Both the position numbers and the translations under genes were made by a program. A stretch of 63,544 nucleotides of DNA, the filler included, from Octopus bimaculoides (taxonomy: Eukaryota): NCBI RefSeq assembly GCF_001194135.2. It is 5 parts of 5 records of this genome, joined end to end, with 100 filler letters (N's around TTAATTAATTAA, not from the genome) between each part and the next. Parts side by side here need not be neighbours in the genome. Positions count along the whole stretch, not along the records: positions 31,113 to 51,221 come from NC_068993.1; 4 more parts are not named here. The stretch is one strand, 5' to 3'. Shown in pieces: positions 14,755-51,221 of the stretch; position 1 is the first letter of the stretch, and every line of letters begins with the position of its first letter. The notes below the pieces were generated by a model. That model did no database searches. It was not told the DNA's origin and worked only from the letters and a program-made list of their open reading frames with translations.

Positions 14755-14920
14755 ACTGTGTTTACGTCCCCGTAACTAGCAGTTCGGCAAAAGAGACCGA
14801 TAGAATAAGTACTAGGCTTACAAATAATAAGTCCTGGGGTTGATTTGCTCGATTAAAGGTGGTGCCCTAGCATGGCCGTAGTCAAATGACTGGAGAAAAT
14901 AAAAGAATAAAAGAAAAGAA
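14755..14920 (+). mobile_element. SINE family B, 3' half
   Basis: GTTTACGTCCCCGTAAC...TTCGGCAAAAGAGACCGATAGAATAAGTACTAGGCTT...CATGGCCGTAGTCAAATGACTG matches the reverse-complement copies at 42692, 48250, 57805 and 61586. Confidence 0.8.
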
Positions 14921-14929
14921 TACATAAAT

Positions 14930-15280
14930 GGCAATTTCTGTCCGTTTGTGACTCTGTGTGTTTGTGAATTTGTTACTTTAACTCCTCTGAGACCATCCAA
15001 CCGATCTTGATGAAACTTGACATGTGTGGGGTGCTTATGCCCATGTGGTCACTTGTGCACTTAGATAATGTTTCAAAAATCAATATGAAATTTCAATGCA
15101 AATCCACATATGAATGTTATTTTCTGCCATATCTTTTAAAATTTTCAACCGATTTTCTTTGAATTTTATACACAGATCGAATATGCGCTAAGAATGGGCT
15201 GAAACGGATAAATTTCTACCTAGGCTACTCAGGCAACAGGTTGCTCTGGCATGTATTTTCTTAAGGGCAGCACTTAAAAT
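14930..15280 (+). mobile_element. Possible Helitron/Helentron-associated (HINE/DINE-like) element
   Basis: CTGTCCGTTTGTGACTCTGTGTG...AACTCCTCTGAGACCATCCAACCGATCTTGATGAAACTTGACATG resembles the conserved block of such elements. The ends are not resolved. Confidence 0.35.
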
Positions 15281-15449
15281 TATCGATTCTAAACGTTGTA
15301 ATGTTGTGTGCTAAAACATGTAACATGTATTTTCTTAATACTTGCACTTACAATTGTCGGTTCTATCCGTTGCAATCGATATTTGATTCTCACGATCAGT
15401 GGAACTATACCCATGACACACAGTCATCGCAAGTGAATTTGCCCCGAAA

Positions 15450-33470: not shown

Positions 33471-34071
33471 TCTCTATATATATATATATATAGTTGAGGA
33501 TGTATTTTACATAGTAAATTGATGTAATTTAAAGCCAAACCAAGTTTAGTCGCTAATTCCAACATTTGGAGGCACAAGATTTAATGGCAATAGTGTTCCT
33601 TTTTATTTTCTAATTTCCGACGTGCTCTATCACTTTATAGTCACTTCATCTCTAAATACATTAGCCTAATAAAAGAAAAATGCCCTCATATGTCATAAGC
33701 TTAAAACATGACGCTTGCGACCAGATTCGAAACAGAAAACGTTTATGTTGTAACTAATTTTTCTTGCCAATAATATTTATGTAACAGCTTTCTTTCTGAA
33801 AAGCCGGGCCATTAGAATATAGGTAAACATATAAACCGAAACATTTTTTTTTCTTGCACAGATGCAAGTGGTTCCATTAAAGTAAAGTTGTATGTTTCCA
33901 ATTTGCATCTATTCATATGAAACGACATAAATACGTTAAATGGACGCCCTCCCTCCGCGTTCTCTATAGTTATGCTCGGATAGAAAAAGAATGTATACAG
34001 AATCACGCGCTCACACTCACAACCAGCATGTACACACACAATATATGTGTGTGTGTGTATGTATACATATG

Positions 34072-34158: not shown

Positions 34159-35816
34159 NNNNNNNNNNNNNNNNNNNNNNNNNNNNNNNNNNNNNNNNNN
34201 NNNNNNNNNNNNNNNNNNNNNNNNNNNNNNNNNNNNNNNNNNNNNNNNNNNNNNNNNNNNNNNNNNNNNNNNNNNNNNNNNNNNNNNNNNNNNNNNNNNN
34301 NNNNNNNNNNNNNNNNNNNNNNNNNNNNNNNNNNNNNNNNNNNNNNNNNNNNNNNNNNNNNNNNNNNNNNNNNNNNNNNNNNNNNNNNNNNNNNNNNNNN
34401 NNNNNNNNNNNNNNNNNNNNNNNNNNNNNNNNNNNNNNNNNNNNNNNNNNNNNNNNNNNNNNNNNNNNNNNNNNNNNNNNNNNNNNNNNNNNNNNNNNNN
34501 NNNNNNNNNNNNNNNNNNNNNNNNNNNNNNNNNNNNNNNNNNNNNNNNNNNNNNNNNNNNNNNNNNNNNNNNNNNNNNNNNNNNNNNNNNNNNNNNNNNN
34601 NNNNNNNNNNNNNNNNNNNNNNNNNNNNNNNNNNNNNNNNNNNNNNNNNNNNNNNNNNNNNNNNNNNNNNNNNNNNNNNNNNNNNNNNNNNNNNNNNNNN
34701 NNNNNNNNNNNNNNNNNNNNNNNNNNNNNNNNNNNNNNNNNNNNNNNNNNNNNNNNNNNNNNNNNNNNNNNNNNNNNNNNNNNNNNNNNNNNNNNNNNNN
34801 NNNNNNNNNNNNNNNNNNNNNNNNNNNNNNNNNNNNNNNNNNNNNNNNNNNNNNNNNNNNNNNNNNNNNNNNNNNNNNNNNNNNNNNNNNNNNNNNNNNN
34901 NNNNNNNNNNNNNNNNNNNNNNNNNNNNNNNNNNNNNNNNNNNNNNNNNNNNNNNNNNNNNNNNNNNNNNNNNNNNNNNNNNNNNNNNNNNNNNNNNNNN
35001 NNNNNNNNNNNNNNNNNNNNNNNNNNNNNNNNNNNNNNNNNNNNNNNNNNNNNNNNNATATATATATATATATATATATATATACATGTGTGTGTGTATG
35101 TATAGATAGATATATTTATGTGTGTGTACGCGTGTATAAATAACAGTGTATATGTGCGTTTATTTGATTCTTCGGAGATTTTAAATACGTTCAATATTTA
35201 TGATAAAATAATGATGTAATATCGAAGCCCTGAACATACTAACATATTAACAATCTTATTTATCGAACACATATGATTACATACTTCACTTTAAGCGTTT
35301 ACATATATATGTGTGTATGTGTGAGTGTGTGTGTTTGTGTGTGTGTGTGTGTGTGTTTTGCGTGCTCATACATCATGTATATGTATATATCCATATAAAT
35401 TTGTATACACGTATATATGTGTGTTTGCGTATGCGTTTCTAAGATATATGTATAATACATATATCTAAAACCATAATGCGCATTATATTATATAATACAT
35501 ATATTTACACCAGTTAACTTTTTACTTCGCTAACCATTTTTCCTTTGTTTTGTATGATTCCATTTTCGGTTCATTTGCAACTGTCTGCAGTAAAAGTTGC
35601 ATTAAACTCTAAACGTACACTGTCATAGTGGTTGAAAACGTGTCACGCAGTAAACCTTGTGCTTGGTTTGCAGAAACAGGAAATAACCCACTGCTTGTGA
35701 ATGTGTTTTTGCATGGGTTTCTTACGATAGCATTGTGATGTTTTTTCTTGTTCTTTCTTTTGTATTCTGATCAGATATTTTTCAACGCAGTGAAANNNNN
35801 NNNNNATATATATAGG

Positions 35817-37178: not shown

Positions 37179-37775
37179 TATAGTATATATGAATTTCTCT
37201 CGTTTGTGTACATATGTGTGTGTATATGTATGTGTATATGTATGTGTATATGTATGTGTATATGGTGTTTGTGCACGTGTGCGTATGTGTGTGTATGTGT
37301 GCTTGTATGCGTATGTGTGCAAGTGTGTGTACATGTGTGTGCGCATGTGTGTGTCCATGTGTGTGTATGTGTGTATATGTATGAGTATGTGGCCTGTGTG
37401 CGTGTGTGTGTACGTGTGTGCATGTGTGCGTATGTGCTTGTATGTGTGCTTGTATGCGTATGTGTGTATGAGTGTGTACATATGTGTGTATGTGTGCATG
37501 TGTGTTTGCGTGCAAGACTCTGTGTGTGATGTGTGTCCATATGTTTGTGTGTATGTTCGAAAAAATATTATTTAGGTTCTTCCATGGATCCTATGTTATC
37601 CAAGAATGCTTAATCCAATTATAACGTCATAAGAGCAAACTGAACGAAACGTTACAATACTTTTATTCAATTGCGATATTTGCTAGTGTTTGGAAGCCAA
37701 GTTCTTGAGTTTGCTATTCAATACGTTGTTTGCGTTCATATAATTATCAACCGTTTCTAGTTTTTATTTTCCCAT

Positions 37776-37980
37776 ATGTCTGAAATCATCGACCGTCCGG
37801 GTTTCTTCGCCCGCCTTCGTACAGGAACCCAACGTTGTCTCCACTGTATCATTCCATACCTCAACCGCCCGAAACCGAAAGATGATGACGCATCGATAGA
37901 TGCCGGAAAACCTAGTTCAACGATCGCAGATATGTCCTCAGTAGCCACATCAGAGGAACTGGGAGATCTCTTTGACATGG
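37776..37980 (+). CDS. Unknown protein, coding exon 1 (68 aa + 1 nt)
   Basis: ATG at 37776; MSEIIDRPGFFARLRTGTQRCLHCIIPYLNRPKPKDDDASIDAGKPSSTIADMSSVATSEELGDLFDM; donor G|GTAAGT at 37981; possible acceptor TTTCTAG ending at 37760. Confidence 0.8.
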
Positions 37981-38254
37981 GTAAGTTTTGATGAATGTTG
38001 TAGATACATGCTGAACTCGGAACCATGTGTTTGGGAAGCACGCTGCCCACGCCTGCGCCCATGTTATGTGTGTGAGTGTATTTGTGCGTGTGTGTGTGTG
38101 TGTGAGTGTGTGTTTCTTTGTGTGTGTGTATGTGCATGTATGCGTGTGTGCGTGTCTGTGTGCGCTCGAGCATCGTTATAGAGATACAAAATATTATATA
38201 ATATATGAACTCTATCCAGACTGCTCTTAATTTTCGTCTTCTTTTGGATTCCAG

Positions 38255-38302
38255 ATACTTCTATCAAGAAGTTACCATTCTTTGACACTCCACTTATTAA
38301 GA
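38255..38302 (+). CDS. Unknown protein, coding exon 2 (48 nt, phase 1-1)
   Basis: Acceptor TTTTCGTCTTCTTTTGGATTCCAG, donor GTAAGT; in frame DTSIKKLPFFDTPLIK. Confidence 0.78.
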
Positions 38303-38727
38303 GTAAGTAATAATAAACGTTCATTTTCATATTGACTTCGTAACTGAATCTTTTATAATTTCCTCCATCTCATCTACATTTATATAGTATTAGCATTCAA
38401 TTGCAAATACCGTTGATCTTTCAGTATGTATTGTTCTTTCACAATGTATTCTAGACGTTTAAGAAGCTATATATCTAATACGCACATATTGCGGCCAACA
38501 ATTGTGTGCTTTTTATTACACCCACAAAACAGACATAACGCAACACAAACATAAATGTATATACACTCTTTCTCACTCAATGTCTTTTACTCTCTCTCCC
38601 TCTCATCCTCACTCACCCACTCATCGTTCCTCTCACTCTGTATCTCTGTATCTCTGTATCTTTCTTTCTCTCTCTCTCACATACACATACAAATGTTTAT
38701 TTTTCACATTGTTATATGTGTTTGCAG

Positions 38728-38775
38728 CGTCGGTTCGTTCTTGTTCAGTAATGGATATAGGAATACATGAAAAGT
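38728..38775 (+). CDS. Unknown protein, coding exon 3 (48 nt, phase 1-1)
   Basis: Acceptor TGTGTTTGCAG, donor GTAAGT; in frame TSVRSCSVMDIGIHEK. Confidence 0.75.
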
Positions 38776-39136
38776 GTAAGTAACAATACAAAACGATTTA
38801 ATATATAATTGCAATTGAATTAATCTAGTAATTCATCAATATATCTATCTGTAAACATATAATATAGCAAAAGATATGTTATGGGTGAAGGACCGTTGAC
38901 AGCCGTACTCCTTGTTGACTCTAAACATTTTCACTTAATTATATATATATATATATNNNNNNNNNNNNNNNNNNNNNNNNNNNNNNNNNNNNNNNNNNNN
39001 NNNNNNNNNNNNNNNNNNNNNNNNNNNNNNNNNNNNNNNNNNNNNNNNNNNNNNNNNNNNNNNNNNNNNNNNNNNNNNNNNNNNNNNNNNNNNNNNNNNN
39101 NNNNNNNNNNNNNNNNNNNNNNNNNNNNNNNNNNNN

Positions 39137-39191
<55 letters not shown>

Positions 39192-39457
39192 TGTATGTAT
39201 GTATGTATGTATGGATGGATGGATCGATCGATCGATGGATCGATGTATAAAATAACGAAGGACGGGGGCTAAACGCAATATAATACGAAAAGGGAAAAGT
39301 TCAATTGTCAGTTAGTGAGGTTGCATGGTAGCACCTATATTGCTAAAAAGAAGAGTGAAAGACATTTATAGCCACAAAAAGCAAATAGTATAGATGTGTG
39401 TGTGTGTGTGTGCATCTCCCGCATGCGTATGTATAATTGTTGTCCTTGTATCTTCAG

Positions 39458-39520
39458 ATTTACCTGCCGTAGAGACAGTGACTCGTGACGTTCGTTTCTA
39501 TGACGGAACGTCTATAATAG
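39458..39520 (+). CDS. Unknown protein, coding exon 4 (63 nt, phase 1-1)
   Basis: Acceptor TGTCCTTGTATCTTCAG, donor AG|GTAAGT; in frame YLPAVETVTRDVRFYDGTSII. Confidence 0.82.
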
Positions 39521-39700
39521 GTAAGTTACAAAATAAAAATCCCTTTTTAACATTTAATCAAAATTTAGTACTGTGGCCAAACTGTAAGTGTTTCGGTCTA
39601 TAAAACTGTCGCATACATAGATACACACATACACAGATATATGTACATGTATATGATTTCTAAACGTATGACTTCTATTACCTATTGTTTCTTTTTTCAG

Positions 39701-39766
39701 AATTGCCATCGATTGGAGCCACACTCCATAATTTTTATGGCATCCATGGACTGACTCCTCCAGACG
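39701..39766 (+). CDS. Unknown protein, coding exon 5 (66 nt, phase 1-1)
   Basis: Acceptor TTGTTTCTTTTTTCAG, donor G|GTAAGC; in frame ELPSIGATLHNFYGIHGLTPPD. Confidence 0.82.
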
Positions 39767-40589
39767 GTAAGCCCTCAACGCACTATGCCATATCACATGA
39801 TTCTTAAAACACACACACACATGTGTATGAGCATTAAGATGCATTGATCATCAGAACGCGAAATCATCGATGATCTGGCTGTATCTGCGACAATGGGAAG
39901 CTTGTCTCCCTCGTCAGCTCATTAACATAGTTCTTTTGTTAGCTTTTGAGTTGTTTTGACTTCTTCACATTTACTTCAGAGGACCTAATATATGTATTAA
40001 CTTGTTCTAGATGTTGAGAGCAATACATAAGCCAAACCAAAAACATTCTACGTCAAAGGATGGCTCTACATAGATCCCAGATCAAAATTCGGGAATACAG
40101 AAAAATAGCATTCAAAAAAGACATCGACATTTGCGCCCCTAATAAACACCCCAGCTTCAGCATGTTTCCCTTCTATAGATTCAGGGATAATGCAAACTGT
40201 AGTCAGCGCAATAGAAAAGGGCCATATTTTATCACAAAATATAAAAATTCCTTTTGAATGCGTCCACCACAAATGACACTATTACAAGGGCCTTAGAATA
40301 ATACCCACTCAAATATTAAATACGATATCTTCAGAACAGTAACTACCCAGGAATTTATTCAGAACAATTCCAATCAGTACAATTACAAAGACAACAGGTG
40401 ACTTTTACGTCACTTGACCATTGAAGCGGATTCCACCAACATCCTACTACTGACATACCACTCCTGCATTTTTCTTATTCTTTCTCTTCTTTTCCTACTC
40501 CCTCCTCCTCCTCCTCTCCTCCTCCTCCTCTTCTCCTCCTCCTCCTCTTCTCCTCCTCCTCTTCCTTCTTCTTCTTCTTCTTCTTTTTC

Positions 40590-40626
<37 letters not shown>

Positions 40627-40673
40627 TGTACATATACAGAATTAATAATATATTTTATCTATTTCTCTTTCAG

Positions 40674-40735
40674 TCTCACCTACAAACGATACTTATACCA
40701 GCAATACTGGTCATGGTAATCGCCAGTGGCACTAA
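40674..40735 (+). CDS. Unknown protein, coding exon 6 (stop TAA 40733-40735; exon continues to 40748)
   Basis: Acceptor TATTTCTCTTTCAG; in phase 1 it reads VSPTNDTYTSNTGHGNRQWH*; donor AAG|GTAAGT at 40749. Confidence 0.68.
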
Positions 40736-40918
40736 ACATCATTGGAAGGTAAGTTGTAATATATGTACAAAGGTTTAACATTGCAGCAGATTCTATTGCG
40801 TTCTCTAAACGTCGTGTGTGCAGCGTGTGCGCGCGAGCGTGTGTAAAGTGACATAGTTGTATATATAGGTAGATAGATACATACATACATACATGGATTG
40901 ATATAGACATCGATGTAT

Positions 40919-40957
<39 letters not shown>

Positions 40958-41573
40958 CACATTGATACATCACACATTGATACATCACACATGCACACAC
41001 ATATATCTATATATAGATATACGTTGGTATATATGAATATATATAATGTGTGTGTTTGCGTGTTTGTGTGTTTGGATTTGTGAACAAGTGTATATGTGTA
41101 CGCTAAGTATTATTTTTATTTTGGAAATCCTTATGACTTCTCATCCTCCATATATTGATCACTTAACATTTGTTCAATAAATCTCCATATCCAAACACAT
41201 TTCCCAAAATAATTTTCCCATATTCTTTGTATTCTTTTGCGTAATTTCCACATTTGTATTGGTGTGAAATTCCTGGGTTTCGCTTTGTTTTAATTTAATT
41301 TAATTTAATTACGGATGCTTAGTGTTCTTACATAGAAGAAATGCCACGCATTCCGGCCCTTTATACATATCGTCTTGATTAATATTTAATAATCAACAAC
41401 CTTCCCAATATATACACATCAGGCAGACATATTGTACTTGCTGCCTATATTTACGAAACAGCGAGCATATTTGAGAGGGAGATCCGTGGCATAGGTACGT
41501 CATAATTAGACACTTTTGCAAATTTAAAATTACGAAGTAATGTTTTGTATTCGAATTGTTTTGATCACTTGAG

Positions 41574-41616
<43 letters not shown>

Positions 41617-41739
41617 TACAAATATATATGTATCTATGAACATATATATATATTTGTGTATGTATGTATGTATGCATGTATAGACATACATACATATACA
41701 CGTATAAACTTGGTGTATTTTTATCTACTTTGCTTTCAG

Positions 41740-41990
41740 ATGTTTGAAGCCATTTGACCGAGATGAGATTTGAATAATATATATAAATTGCCATAACTAT
41801 ACAGTGCAAAGAATTCCTCAGACAGCTCCACCGATTAAGAGAATTCAACAGCATTAAGTTCTGTCGAAGAACACTATATGAATTATCCGGCGTTAGGTAC
41901 AAAATATGATGAACCACCCGCCTCAATCTATACCTTTTATGTTAAAGTTAAATGAGCAATTTCGTAAATATATACATAAATAAATAAATT
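41740..41990 (+). other. Probable terminal 3' UTR exon of the unknown gene, with polyadenylation signal
   Basis: Acceptor TCTACTTTGCTTTCAG ending at 41739; overlapping AATAAA at 41979-41988. Confidence 0.55.
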
Positions 41991-42188
41991 TTAAAAAACA
42001 GGTGAACAACAATCATAAAATAGGAATTCAATTGTGAAATATTTATGGGCATCATTCTAAATAAAATAATTTTTAAAATGATTGTTGATTCACTCGTTTA
42101 TGCATTATATTATTCTAGACTTTTGAGAACGTGTCTCTAATAAATGCTATAAACCTATGCTTTGTGCATATCTATCTCTGTCTGTCTG

Positions 42189-43823: not shown

Positions 43824-44769
43824 TTTGTTCCTGCGTTCGATAAACAGGCGTTGCATTTTGGTCAATGCTTTGTCGATATCTTCATGTCATCTTAAGCCTT
43901 TGGACAGCGAGAAATTACTTGGAAACCCATCGGTTGCACTGAGCTAGAATTTCTAAAGAATAATCTTGTCACTTAATGTTGAACGCCAATTCTACCTGAG
44001 AATTGTGGGGAGGAAACATGTGACTCTGGAGTGATCAAAGACTTACTGTAATTCAATGAGTAAGCATTTGAGTTCATCTAACACCTAAATACACATCATT
44101 GATACCGACGGAGGACCCGCTTACATATTTATGTATACATACTTATTTCTCTGAAGCCTTGTATGAATTATGTAACTGAAAGTACATTACTATATTTAAT
44201 TTAAGTTCAGAATTGTTTCATTTTACTTCATGTGGTTAGGCATAATTTTTCCTTGTATTTATGCTTTTATTTAATTAATATGTTGGTACATGTATTTTAT
44301 TAATATTCCTCTTGCATCAGGTATAATTGTGGATTGAAAGCCAGAAACTTTCCTCAAGAATATAGGAACTAATTTTTTTTTTAGTATTATCATTATTATT
44401 ATCCTGGAATATTGGTTGCGCGTTTGGTCCGCCTGCACGTGTGATGTGGTCCGTTATATATGTGAGAGTTTGCGGATGTTGGCATGTGCAAAAATCGCAC
44501 CTCTTTAAAATACTACGATTATAATGCGCTAAATTTTGATCTTGGTCGGAAAATTCTTTACAGGGTTTGATTTTTCAGAATTGGTTCGGTTGCCTCATTA
44601 CAAGCAGAAACGAAAATCTAATGACAGCTATTACCATCTGCCCTTATGCTATAACTTGGAAAAGAAAGAAACAGAAAAAAAAAAACAAGAAAACCTTATC
44701 ATGCCGTAATATCCTACTGCCATGATTGAAAACTATAATAAACACACTTTCTATTCTCTCTTACTACCA

Positions 44770-49188: not shown

Positions 49189-49888
49189 AATAAGGTGGCT
49201 AGACGCAAAAGGGGAAATAATTCACCGCCACGAAAATTGACCAATGGTGTAGGGGGCACCCACATTGCTAGAAACGAGAGTCATAGGATCTCTAGCCACA
49301 GAAAGCATATATCCTATGCGATGGATGCCGCGCGATGGGGCTGAACCTGAAACATTGTAGTAGTGAATTAGAAGTTCTCACCAACCCCAAACAATTATCG
49401 AACTTTCTGGACTTTTGAAACTCCGAAAACTTGCTAATTTATAAAACTAGAAGGCAAATTAGCGCAATTTCGAGTGAGTAATATTATATTCTAGTCGACA
49501 TAAAACAACTTAAGCGGGCATTAACGTTATTTTCATATTCATAATCTATTATTGCAGACTTGTTTCATCATGTTAAAGGTTTTATGATAATGAGATAGAC
49601 AGCGGATGGAGTTTATTGAAAAAATTGGTAACAATAAAATATATAGTAAACATAACTCCGCGTAGGTTACTGCTTGTCTCTTTATTCTATTCTCTCCCTC
49701 ACTTTCCAGAGATTCTTTCGCTTCCTCTCTCTTGCTTTTCTCCCCTTTCCTCTCACTTGTCTGTCTGTCTCTGTCTGTCTCTATCTATCTAACAACCTAT
49801 CTATCTATTTATCTATCTATCTCTCTGAGAATCATTACTTATACTGCCGTACAATCACTTCGTGTCTCTCTCACTCTCTCTCTCTCTC

Positions 49889-50333: not shown

Positions 50334-50867
50334 ACGATTCACAAGCGGCCCCCGTAACCTGGCGGTTCAGAAAAGTGTATAATAAGTAACCAATCTTAAA
50401 AGACAACATTAGCGCAGGAGCGAGTTCTTTCGACAAAGCAATTTAAGACAGTGTTAGCCTTCGACGATGGCTAAGCCGGCCGAAACTTGAAGTCACTATC
50501 AACATTGTATATATAAGTTATGCATTGCCGAACGCAAGAGAATCCTAAAAGACTCCCACGTGCGAGGGAGCATCCTGGACTCCAGGACGGATATTTTCGG
50601 GCCAAGCTTGCATTTTAGAAGATCCCTGCAGGCCTTTTGGAATCCGCAAGGCGACGCTACAGCCGGAAATCAATGTCCAAGGCTGAAGGGGGACAATCGT
50701 TTGACTTCGTGGTTATTTGGTAACCGCAAGATGGCGGTGCGGGCGAAGCTCGATGGCCGATGGCAAAGGGAGATAATCATCTAGCATTTACCTTTATAGC
50801 GAGGCATTCCTAAGGGGCCAGCTGTGTTTGGGGTCGGAAGATACACCATAAGGCTAAACCCCTTATG

Positions 50868-51221
50868 AGCGAAACAATAAATCATATTATCTCTGGCTGC
50901 CCAGTCCTGGCTAAGAAGGAATATATTCACAGACACGACAGAGCTGGAACCTGTATACACTGGAAGCTATGCCAACATTATGGAATAACAACAGAAAAAA
51001 GATGGTATAAACACACGCCAGAAAAGGTCACAGAAAACGAGAAAGCAACCATATTCTGGGATATGCCAATACACACAGATAGAGAAATTAAGGCAAATAG
51101 ACCAGATATAGTTGTCAAAGATCATGAAGAAAAAAAATGCTTTCTAATTGATGTATCAATACCAGCAGATGACAACGTTTCTCTAAAAGAAATGGAAAAA
51201 CTTTCAAAATACAAAGACCTG
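50868..51221 (+). mobile_element. R4/Dong-clade non-LTR retrotransposon: zinc-knuckle end and restriction-like endonuclease
   Basis: ETINHIISGCPVLAKKEYIHRHD...HWKLC...WYKHTPEKVTEN...WDMPIHTDREIKANRPDIVVKD...LIDVSIP...EKLSKYKDL. Open frame truncated by the linker. Confidence 0.92.

Follow-up and report, generated by a model that had tools for sequence, protein, structure and literature searches.

The closest described system for the locus studied here is the uncharacterised Octopus bimaculoides gene LOC106871839, together with its relatives in the genus. Its public records, namely RefSeq XP_014774042.1, titled 'uncharacterized protein LOC106871839 isoform X1', and UniProt A0A0L8HAN5, carry neither a name nor a function, and a literature search on the locus and accession names returned no paper. 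A second public isoform, XP_014774043.1 (isoform X2), corresponds to X1 minus exon 3. The orthologue in O. sinensis, LOC118765699, comprises 158 aa and shares 77–80% protein identity with LOC106871839, and the O. vulgaris orthologue is a 'hypothetical predicted protein' of 126 aa, the model of which leaves out exons 2 and 3, both nevertheless present and undamaged in the genome. Protein identity to these two orthologues is about 80%. Compared with the O. bimaculoides gene, both lack 5 aa in exon 1, diverge in the C-terminal tail, and have considerably longer introns 1 and 3. Furthermore, O. bimaculoides itself possesses a paralogue, A0A0L8ICI9 (P0005), which is encoded elsewhere in the genome, outside the piece examined here, and is 52% identical over 86 aa. 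Its model of 83 aa is partial, being truncated at both ends and stopping at ...RDLY, but shares the elements RPK, SST..D.SS, MDTS.KK, VRSCSVMD, and LP.VETV.RD with LOC106871839. By these sequence comparisons, LOC106871839 belongs to a small family that is known to date from Octopus alone.

The window, i.e., the whole stretch of DNA analyzed, comprises 63,544 nucleotides. The 20-kb piece of it that carries the gene is identical to chromosome CM046613.1 of assembly GCA_001194135.2, with matching gaps, and places LOC106871839 at about 15.23 Mb. The initial annotation of this DNA described a 'hidden' six-exon gene encoding a protein of 163 aa. The spliced protein is 100% identical to XP_014774042.1 and A0A0L8HAN5 (163/163 residues, E 6e-107), so that the gene was already public, including its isoform XP_014774043.1, and the attribute 'hidden' had to be dropped. 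The gene read here and the gene of the public records are the same, with no difference between them. Accordingly, the six-exon gene is the annotated, uncharacterised LOC106871839, with a probable 3' UTR exon. Indirect support for its transcription comes from the public gene models, with two isoforms in RefSeq and a UniProt protein entry identical to the RefSeq one. A collection of 15 billion proteins contained no transcript-derived copy of the 163-aa protein, the corresponding cluster consisting of one member from one contig.

Exon architecture and splice signals

All six exons were found on the + strand at the positions initially proposed, and their in-frame splicing yields exactly the 163-aa protein. 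The coding part of exon 1 (37776–37980; aa 1–68) ends in phase 1 and is followed by exon 2 (38255–38302; 48 nt, aa 69–84), which is also present in the O. vulgaris genome, and by exon 3 (38728–38775; 48 nt, aa 85–100), a cassette containing VRSCSVMD that is absent from X2. Exon 4 (39458–39520; 63 nt, aa 101–121) encodes LPAVETVTRDVRFYDGTSII, and exon 5 (39701–39766; 66 nt) encodes aa 122–143. Exon 6 (40674–40748) consists of the final 62 coding nucleotides, including the TAA stop codon of the spliced reading frame at 40733–40735, and 13 nt of 3' UTR. Each of exons 2 to 6 is preceded by a YAG acceptor behind a pyrimidine-rich tract, and the donors, including the one after exon 6, read GTAAGT throughout, except for GTAAGC at exon 5. 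All exon junctions are in phase 1, and the four internal mini-exons are symmetric (phase 1-1), meaning that the frame survives the skipping of any one of them. Forms lacking internal exons are already represented in the annotation, with exon 3 skipped in the O. bimaculoides X2 isoform, and exons 2 and 3 skipped in the O. vulgaris model.

That six near-consensus donors of consistent phase are unlikely to arise by chance, as originally argued, was borne out by the statistics of the 20-kb piece. On its + strand, seven out of ten GTAAG[TC] sites fall inside 37981–40749, and, under strict signal rules, a chain of five exons was recovered from the real + strand, whereas a chain of at least five appeared in none of 200 sequences simulated from the piece with a first-order Markov model. 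Exon 3 is missing from the chain obtained under these rules for the sole reason that its pyrimidine tract, the weakest among the acceptors (12/20), did not suffice. An origin of the exons as repeat copies or as part of a tandem paralogue within the piece was rejected, each exon being found once only by tblastn. A scan of the whole piece against Rfam gave zero matches.

Intron 3 is interrupted by an assembly gap (38957–39136), the flanks of which are colinear with O. sinensis: the left flank (38907–38956) aligns to positions 14794–14848 of O. sinensis L001, and the right flank (39157–39410) to positions 15060–15318. The matching O. sinensis interval is gap-free and about 211 nt long, is made up of the simple repeats (TA)n, (AG)n, and AATT, and contains no candidate for an open phase-1 exon bounded by AG and GT. 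Moreover, exon 3 is joined straight to exon 4 in the O. sinensis protein. An unseen exon within the gap is therefore ruled out by the O. sinensis orthologue.

The unique sequence immediately upstream (37560–37775, + strand), which is conserved and adjoins the ATG, probably represents the core promoter and 5' UTR. Within it, positions 37576–37775 are 92.5% identical to O. sinensis against a background of 88.8%, with a perfect run of 79 nt at 37678–37756. The AG at 37759–37760 is not conserved, which makes an acceptor at this position unlikely. Farther upstream of the block, a TG-rich microsatellite was observed. Downstream of exon 6, a probable 3' UTR exon extends on the + strand from 41740 to 42085, its end being uncertain. 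Its acceptor (TTTCAG, 41734–41739) is conserved, and positions 41740–41990 are 90.4% identical to O. sinensis. The initially proposed 3' UTR exon with AATAAA can thus be upheld as a probable exon, but the particular AATAAA named (41979–41988) is doubtful, since it is found in O. bimaculoides only and is absent from O. sinensis and O. vulgaris. Another AATAAA, at 42060–42065, is also kept in O. vulgaris.

Conservation and selection among Octopus species

The matching loci of O. sinensis and O. vulgaris, where the DNA flanking the gene is colinear with that of O. bimaculoides, retain all six exons, their phases, the 11 splice sites, the position of the stop codon, and the donor behind it; start, stop, and reading frame are likewise conserved. 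The sole coding indel is an in-frame 15-nt deletion in exon 1 of O. sinensis and O. vulgaris. In both species, the donor of exon 1 reads GTGAGT and that of exon 5 GTAAGG. Only 1 of 477 coding nucleotides differs between O. sinensis and O. vulgaris, and the comparison therefore effectively involves two independent lineages.

Exon identity to O. sinensis amounts to 90.1%, barely higher than the 88.8% determined for alignable non-coding DNA, with exon 3 reaching 95.8%. Over the whole CDS, dN/dS is about 0.88 and does not differ from 1 (p=0.72). This average covers very different segments. Residues 1–84 show a dN/dS of about 1.1, and the C-terminal tail encoded by exon 6 is highly divergent (dN/dS 4.6; 14 non-synonymous versus 1 synonymous change). 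The core of aa 85–142 yields a dN/dS of 0.26 (p=0.02), and constraint is strongest in exon 4, where 1 non-synonymous change stands against 4 synonymous ones (dN/dS 0.07; Fisher p=0.013). Judging from these substitution patterns, constraint looks limited to the core. The blocks RSCSVMD and LPxVETVxRD are invariant between LOC106871839 and its paralogue A0A0L8ICI9.

The search for more distant relatives confirmed the assumption that the protein has no recognisable domain: the scan against Pfam returned zero families even at E<=10, and the sequence profile search against the PDB no relative at the same threshold. Among 1.84 billion representatives, the profile search revealed no credible homologue outside Octopus, and a second, word-indexed search with an alignment including the paralogue found no further members. 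Two marginal matches (E about 7e-4) in the 1.84 billion representatives were internally repetitive and were taken as composition or repeat artefacts; one is an Acer negundo (maple) protein, and the other carries a YDG/T-rich repeat. The initial annotation had considered the gene lineage-restricted and possibly cephalopod-specific. Homologues were indeed seen in Octopus only, but the term 'cephalopod-specific' cannot be claimed from three Octopus species, two of them near-identical, because a short and fast-evolving protein would, by a rough estimate, fall below detection at squid distance.

These patterns bear on two further explanations of the origin of the locus. It is rather unlikely, although worth considering, that LOC106871839 is a young or decaying locus with a near-neutral reading frame that is transcribed and spliced, its function residing in the RNA, in flanking regulatory DNA, or nowhere. 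Neutral-like dN/dS values outside the core and over the whole CDS would fit such a locus, as would the lack of a domain or confident fold and the fact that the upstream 200 nt and the 3' UTR exon are conserved as much as the CDS or more. Perfectly conserved non-coding blocks also surround the gene; however, RNA folding of these ultra-conserved blocks gave no significant structure, and they belong to no Rfam family. Against near-neutrality stand the constrained core, the retention of start, stop, frame, and every splice site, and, in particular, the paralogue, which retains discrete protein blocks at an identity of 52% and thereby demands long-term coding constraint. The second explanation, namely that the protein belongs to an older and wider family but has diverged so strongly that its relatives lie below detection, is considered unlikely. 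Part of the apparent taxonomic restriction of genes is usually due to homology detection failure (PMC7660931), and the bit score of LOC106871839 drops from 372 (self) to 275 already at the distance of O. sinensis. Assuming exponential decay according to this concept, the detection limit is reached at roughly 6–7x the O. sinensis distance, which is about the octopus–squid split (rough estimate; PMC7660931). Nevertheless, Pfam, the PDB, and the 1.84 billion representatives offered nothing apart from the two non-credible repetitive proteins.

Protein properties and candidate function

The LOC106871839 protein has a mass of 18 kDa, is acidic (pI 5.6), and is rich in Ser, Thr, Asp, and Pro. Its AlphaFold2 model is unstructured (pLDDT 31.6), and the earlier description of a disordered protein probably holds for most of its length, although a low value obtained from an alignment of four sequences is no proof of disorder. 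The stated lack of a signal peptide agrees with the charged N-terminus and the missing hydrophobic segment; likewise, no membrane span was predicted, the highest Kyte-Doolittle mean over 19 residues being 0.7. As a tentative proposal, LOC106871839 may encode a soluble, largely disordered intracellular protein acting through short linear motifs in the core of aa 85–142. One candidate motif would be a basophilic-kinase-type site, R88-S-C-S91, on cassette exon 3; another would be the LPAVETVTRDVRFY-x5-II block on exon 4. Alternative splicing would then add or drop part of an interaction or regulation module. The motif assignments are regular-expression matches, which are fairly frequent by chance.

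A rival explanation, a disordered, lineage-specific docking or regulatory subunit of protein phosphatase 1 (PP1) that binds via R110-D-V-R-F114, followed by the hydrophobic pair I120-I121 six residues on, is judged very unlikely. PP1 regulators are typically disordered and fast-diverging, and the loose RVxF pattern [RK]-x(0,1)-[VI]-{P}-[FW] matches residues 110–114 in O. bimaculoides and the same position in O. sinensis, within the most constrained exon. However, the stricter RVxF consensus disfavours Asp immediately before Val, as is the case here, and chance alone would, by estimate, produce the loose motif in about 20%, or roughly one in five, of proteins of this size. Furthermore, no similarity to any Pfam family of PP1 regulators was detected, and the model of the paralogue stops at ...RDLY, which leaves the conservation of the motif beyond judgement. 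Very unlikely, too, is the membrane anchoring originally suggested, by means of a palmitoylated CxxC or a hydrophobic N-terminal helix. AlphaFold2 places a helix at residues 10–29 with very low confidence, in a basic, amphipathic stretch whose hydrophobic moment rises to 1.5 (Kyte-Doolittle scale), and C24 is conserved. Yet both O. sinensis and O. vulgaris carry V in place of C21 and Q in place of H23, so that C24 alone is retained and no conserved CxxC exists. The helical stretch has a mean hydropathy of about 0, and the maximum given above for the protein is far under that of a membrane span. The CxxC and membrane-anchor reading is consequently not supported, an anchor being at best the guess of an amphipathic helix.

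A more far-reaching scenario appears improbable, in which LOC106871839 and its paralogue would form a genuinely new family born in Octopus or the octopods. Most of the protein would drift near-neutrally, whereas a core of about 55 aa, located on in-frame cassette mini-exons, would have gained a docking or phospho-regulatory role that splicing can tune, e.g., for PP1 or a basophilic kinase. If this reading were true, the locus would offer a tractable cephalopod example of a recently born gene.

Comparison with orphan genes

LOC106871839 is one among many uncharacterised, taxonomically restricted octopus genes, and its recovery has little significance beyond bookkeeping, namely that a first-stage reader was able to retrieve a genuine multi-exon gene from raw sequence. 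Interest in the gene would arise only from expression linked to a tissue peculiar to cephalopods, or from a defined partner bound by its constrained core. Taxonomically restricted 'orphan' genes represent a category, not a family, and membership in it is silent on the mechanism of LOC106871839. Within this category, the gene corresponds closely to orphan genes for short disordered proteins, with which it shares its shortness, the lack of a domain, low predicted structure, fast evolution, and a narrow range. LOC106871839 is therefore an ordinary orphan gene, which RefSeq and UniProt already list together with its isoforms.

Exon structure and identity of the gene

Splicing of six intervals on the + strand (37776-37980, 38255-38302, 38728-38775, 39458-39520, 39701-39766, and 40674-40748), as read from region 37600-42100 of the window, yielded a 492-nt ORF with its stop codon at 40733-40735, whose translation matched exactly the 163-aa sequence predicted in the initial annotation. 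All junctions are phase 1, and the four internal exons (48, 48, 63, and 66 nt) are symmetric (phase 1-1). The donor and polypyrimidine acceptor signals previously described were both present: five donors read GTAAGT and one GTAAGC, and the acceptors of exons 2-6 are CAG sites with 12-17 pyrimidines in the preceding 20 bases. Ten GTAAGT or GTAAGC sites occur on the + strand of the 20-kb piece from NC_068993.1 (31,113-51,221), seven of them inside 37981-40749. With strict signal rules applied, a five-exon ORF chain emerged from the real + strand; exon 3 was omitted solely because its pyrimidine tract is the gene's weakest in O. bimaculoides (12 of 20 vs. 14-17 for the others). No five-exon chain arose in 200 first-order Markov simulations of the piece, most of which gave two exons. 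The splice-signal pattern is far beyond chance, as had been suspected from the donors.

The gene had been regarded as hidden, which was not borne out, since a protein 100% identical over its full length is public as XP_014774042.1 (UniProt A0A0L8HAN5; 'uncharacterized protein LOC106871839 isoform X1 [Octopus bimaculoides]'). The piece was base-for-base identical to CM046613.1 of GCA_001194135.2 (15,225,158-15,248,117), including the same gaps. LOC106871839 was made public with the first O. bimaculoides annotation, and no mention was found in a literature search for the locus names. The gene is confirmed as real; it was known before, annotated but uncharacterised.

Any internal exon can be left out without a frameshift, as each is phase 1-1 and has a length divisible by three. 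Exon 3 is skipped in RefSeq isoform X2 (XP_014774043.1, 147 aa) of LOC106871839, and exons 2 and 3 are skipped in the public O. vulgaris model; the weak polypyrimidine tract of exon 3 fits a cassette exon.

Orthologous loci and genomic surroundings

The O. sinensis orthologue (LOC118765699) comprises 158 aa and is ~80% identical, and O. vulgaris is represented by a public model of 126 aa. The locus is colinear in both species, with all six exons, every acceptor and donor, and the stop position present. Exons 2 and 3, missing from the O. vulgaris model, are intact in its genome, and the gene spliced in full encodes the same protein as in O. sinensis. As only 1 of 477 coding bases differs, the two species count as one lineage.

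An assembly gap (38957-39136) lies within intron 3. Its left (38907-38956) and right (39157-39410) flanks align to positions 14794-14848 and 15060-15318 of the gap-free O. sinensis locus (L001), and therefore ~211 nt correspond to the missing stretch. This counterpart contains (TA)n, (AG)n, and AATT/ATAG repeats, a search of it for an AG...GT interval open in phase 1-1 returned none, and exon 3 is followed directly by exon 4 in the O. sinensis protein. From this comparison, the gap sides are continuous and the reading frame across the gap is sound. Intron 3 of O. sinensis and O. vulgaris additionally carries ~2.4 kb inserting between O. bimaculoides 38865 and 38866, which is sequenced DNA outside the gap. 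This AT-rich extra sequence (L001 12339-14766 and 12686-14474 of the orthologous locus L003), missing in O. bimaculoides, features a ~950-nt internal tandem duplication as well as minisatellites of 36-38 nt. Intron 1 measures 1.5 kb in these species vs. 274 nt in O. bimaculoides.

A GTAAGT donor 13 nt after the stop codon is also kept in O. sinensis and O. vulgaris, and a probable 3' UTR exon, itself well conserved, begins at a conserved acceptor (41739/41740). The AATAAA previously assigned to the 3' UTR exon (41979-41988) is absent in the orthologues; another AATAAA, at 42060-42065, is common to O. bimaculoides and O. vulgaris. Unique conserved sequence extends from ~37560 to the ATG, with a TG-rich microsatellite farther upstream. 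Since conservation does not extend to the AG at 37759-37760, exon 1 probably carries its own 5' UTR, without a preceding exon.

In all three species, the 10 kb flanking the gene on each side held no other called gene. Blocks of 79-197 nt (33795-33991, 44528-44645, 49492-49655, 41294-41376, 35146-35227, and 37678-37756) match O. sinensis at every base, vs. an average identity of 88.8% for alignable DNA of the piece; they gave no Rfam match, significant RNA fold, or convincing ORF, and have the appearance of conserved cis-regulatory elements, in a region poor in genes. An ORF cut by the piece edge (50865-51221, +; MSETINHIISGCPVLAKKEY...NRPDIVVKDHEEKKCFLIDVSIPADDNV...) is presumably similar to the C-terminal portion of ORF2 proteins from invertebrate non-LTR retrotransposons; the only Pfam hit, to DUF5620, was insignificant. 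Microsatellites of the TG/CA, TA, CT, and tetranucleotide types are abundant in the piece (e.g., 37190-37555, 38060-38170, 40470-40620, and 40880-41080) and account for its assembly gaps (all eight are flanked by microsatellites) and for many spurious 'ORFs' (HTHTHT, IYIYIY).

Constraint and relatives of the protein

Nei-Gojobori comparison of O. bimaculoides and O. sinensis, in which counts are small throughout, gave a dN/dS of 0.88 for the whole CDS (dN 0.103, dS 0.117; 35 non-synonymous/12 synonymous; Fisher p = 0.72) and about 1.1 for aa 1-84 (15/4; p = 1.0), but 0.26 for the core, aa 85-142 in exons 3-5 (dN 0.048, dS 0.18; 6/7; p = 0.02). Exon 4 reached 0.07 (dN 0.022, dS 0.304; 1/4; p = 0.013), and the C-terminal tail in exon 6 reached 4.6 (dN 0.378, dS 0.082; 14/1; p = 0.15). 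The proposed dN/dS check thus favours constraint in the core and not over the whole CDS, and protein-level constraint between the two lineages is demonstrable only for aa 85-142. DNA identity amounts to 90.1% in exons vs. 88.8% in alignable non-coding DNA of the piece, 92.5% in the 200 nt upstream of the ATG, and 90.4% in the 3' UTR exon; the only coding indel (15 nt) is in frame.

When 1.84 billion representative proteins were searched with an HMM profile, one further true relative emerged, A0A0L8ICI9, an 83-aa partial O. bimaculoides model with 52% identity over 86 aa and invariant blocks VRSCSVMD and LP.VETV.RD. It is a paralogue at another genomic location, its locus being absent from the 20-kb piece, and its conserved blocks are the strongest sign of a long-kept coding sequence in the family. 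A second search, with an alignment including the paralogue, gave no additional relatives. Two marginal matches (E ~7e-4) were discarded as repetitive proteins (one from maple, the other a short-repeat protein).

Protein properties and possible roles

The protein (18.1 kDa, pI 5.6, GRAVY -0.35) is rich in T, D, S, I, and P. In agreement with the earlier view that it has no recognisable domain, neither Pfam nor PDB sequences matched at E<=10. AlphaFold2 with a four-sequence alignment gave a pLDDT of 31.6, with 162 of 163 residues below 50 and a tentative helix (residues 10-29) as the sole feature, which is compatible with disorder, although the shallow alignment makes this weak evidence.

That the gene itself is real can be held with high confidence. 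We consider it probable that it is an annotated, Octopus-restricted small gene encoding a soluble, largely disordered protein, with the exons 3-5 core as its functional part. Such a protein might, tentatively, act in linear-motif binding or regulation, as a module tuned by cassette-exon skipping. The conserved RxxS site of cassette exon 3, R88-S-C-S91, is invariant in the paralogue too, and T140-P and S145-P are conserved motif-like sites; these assignments, like the PP1 pattern discussed below, are regex matches and serve as leads only. A young locus evolving near-neutrally, with little protein function, would suit the whole-CDS ratio but not the core, and seems unlikely. Somewhat less likely still, and not exclusive of the other readings, is a diverged member of an older family with relatives below detection (PMC7660931).

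The membrane anchor proposed earlier is highly improbable: the N-terminal segment is indeed basic (residues 7-35, moderately amphipathic), but its CxxC (C21, C24) is not shared by O. sinensis and O. vulgaris, which carry V21 and Q23, and no transmembrane segment was found by Kyte-Doolittle 19-residue means (maximum 0.7). The N-terminus is not signal-peptide-like either, as had been stated. A PP1 docking subunit is similarly improbable, if marginally less so; the conserved R110-D-V-R-F114, with I120-I121 after it, matches the RVxF pattern for PP1 docking in its loose form and departs from the strict form.
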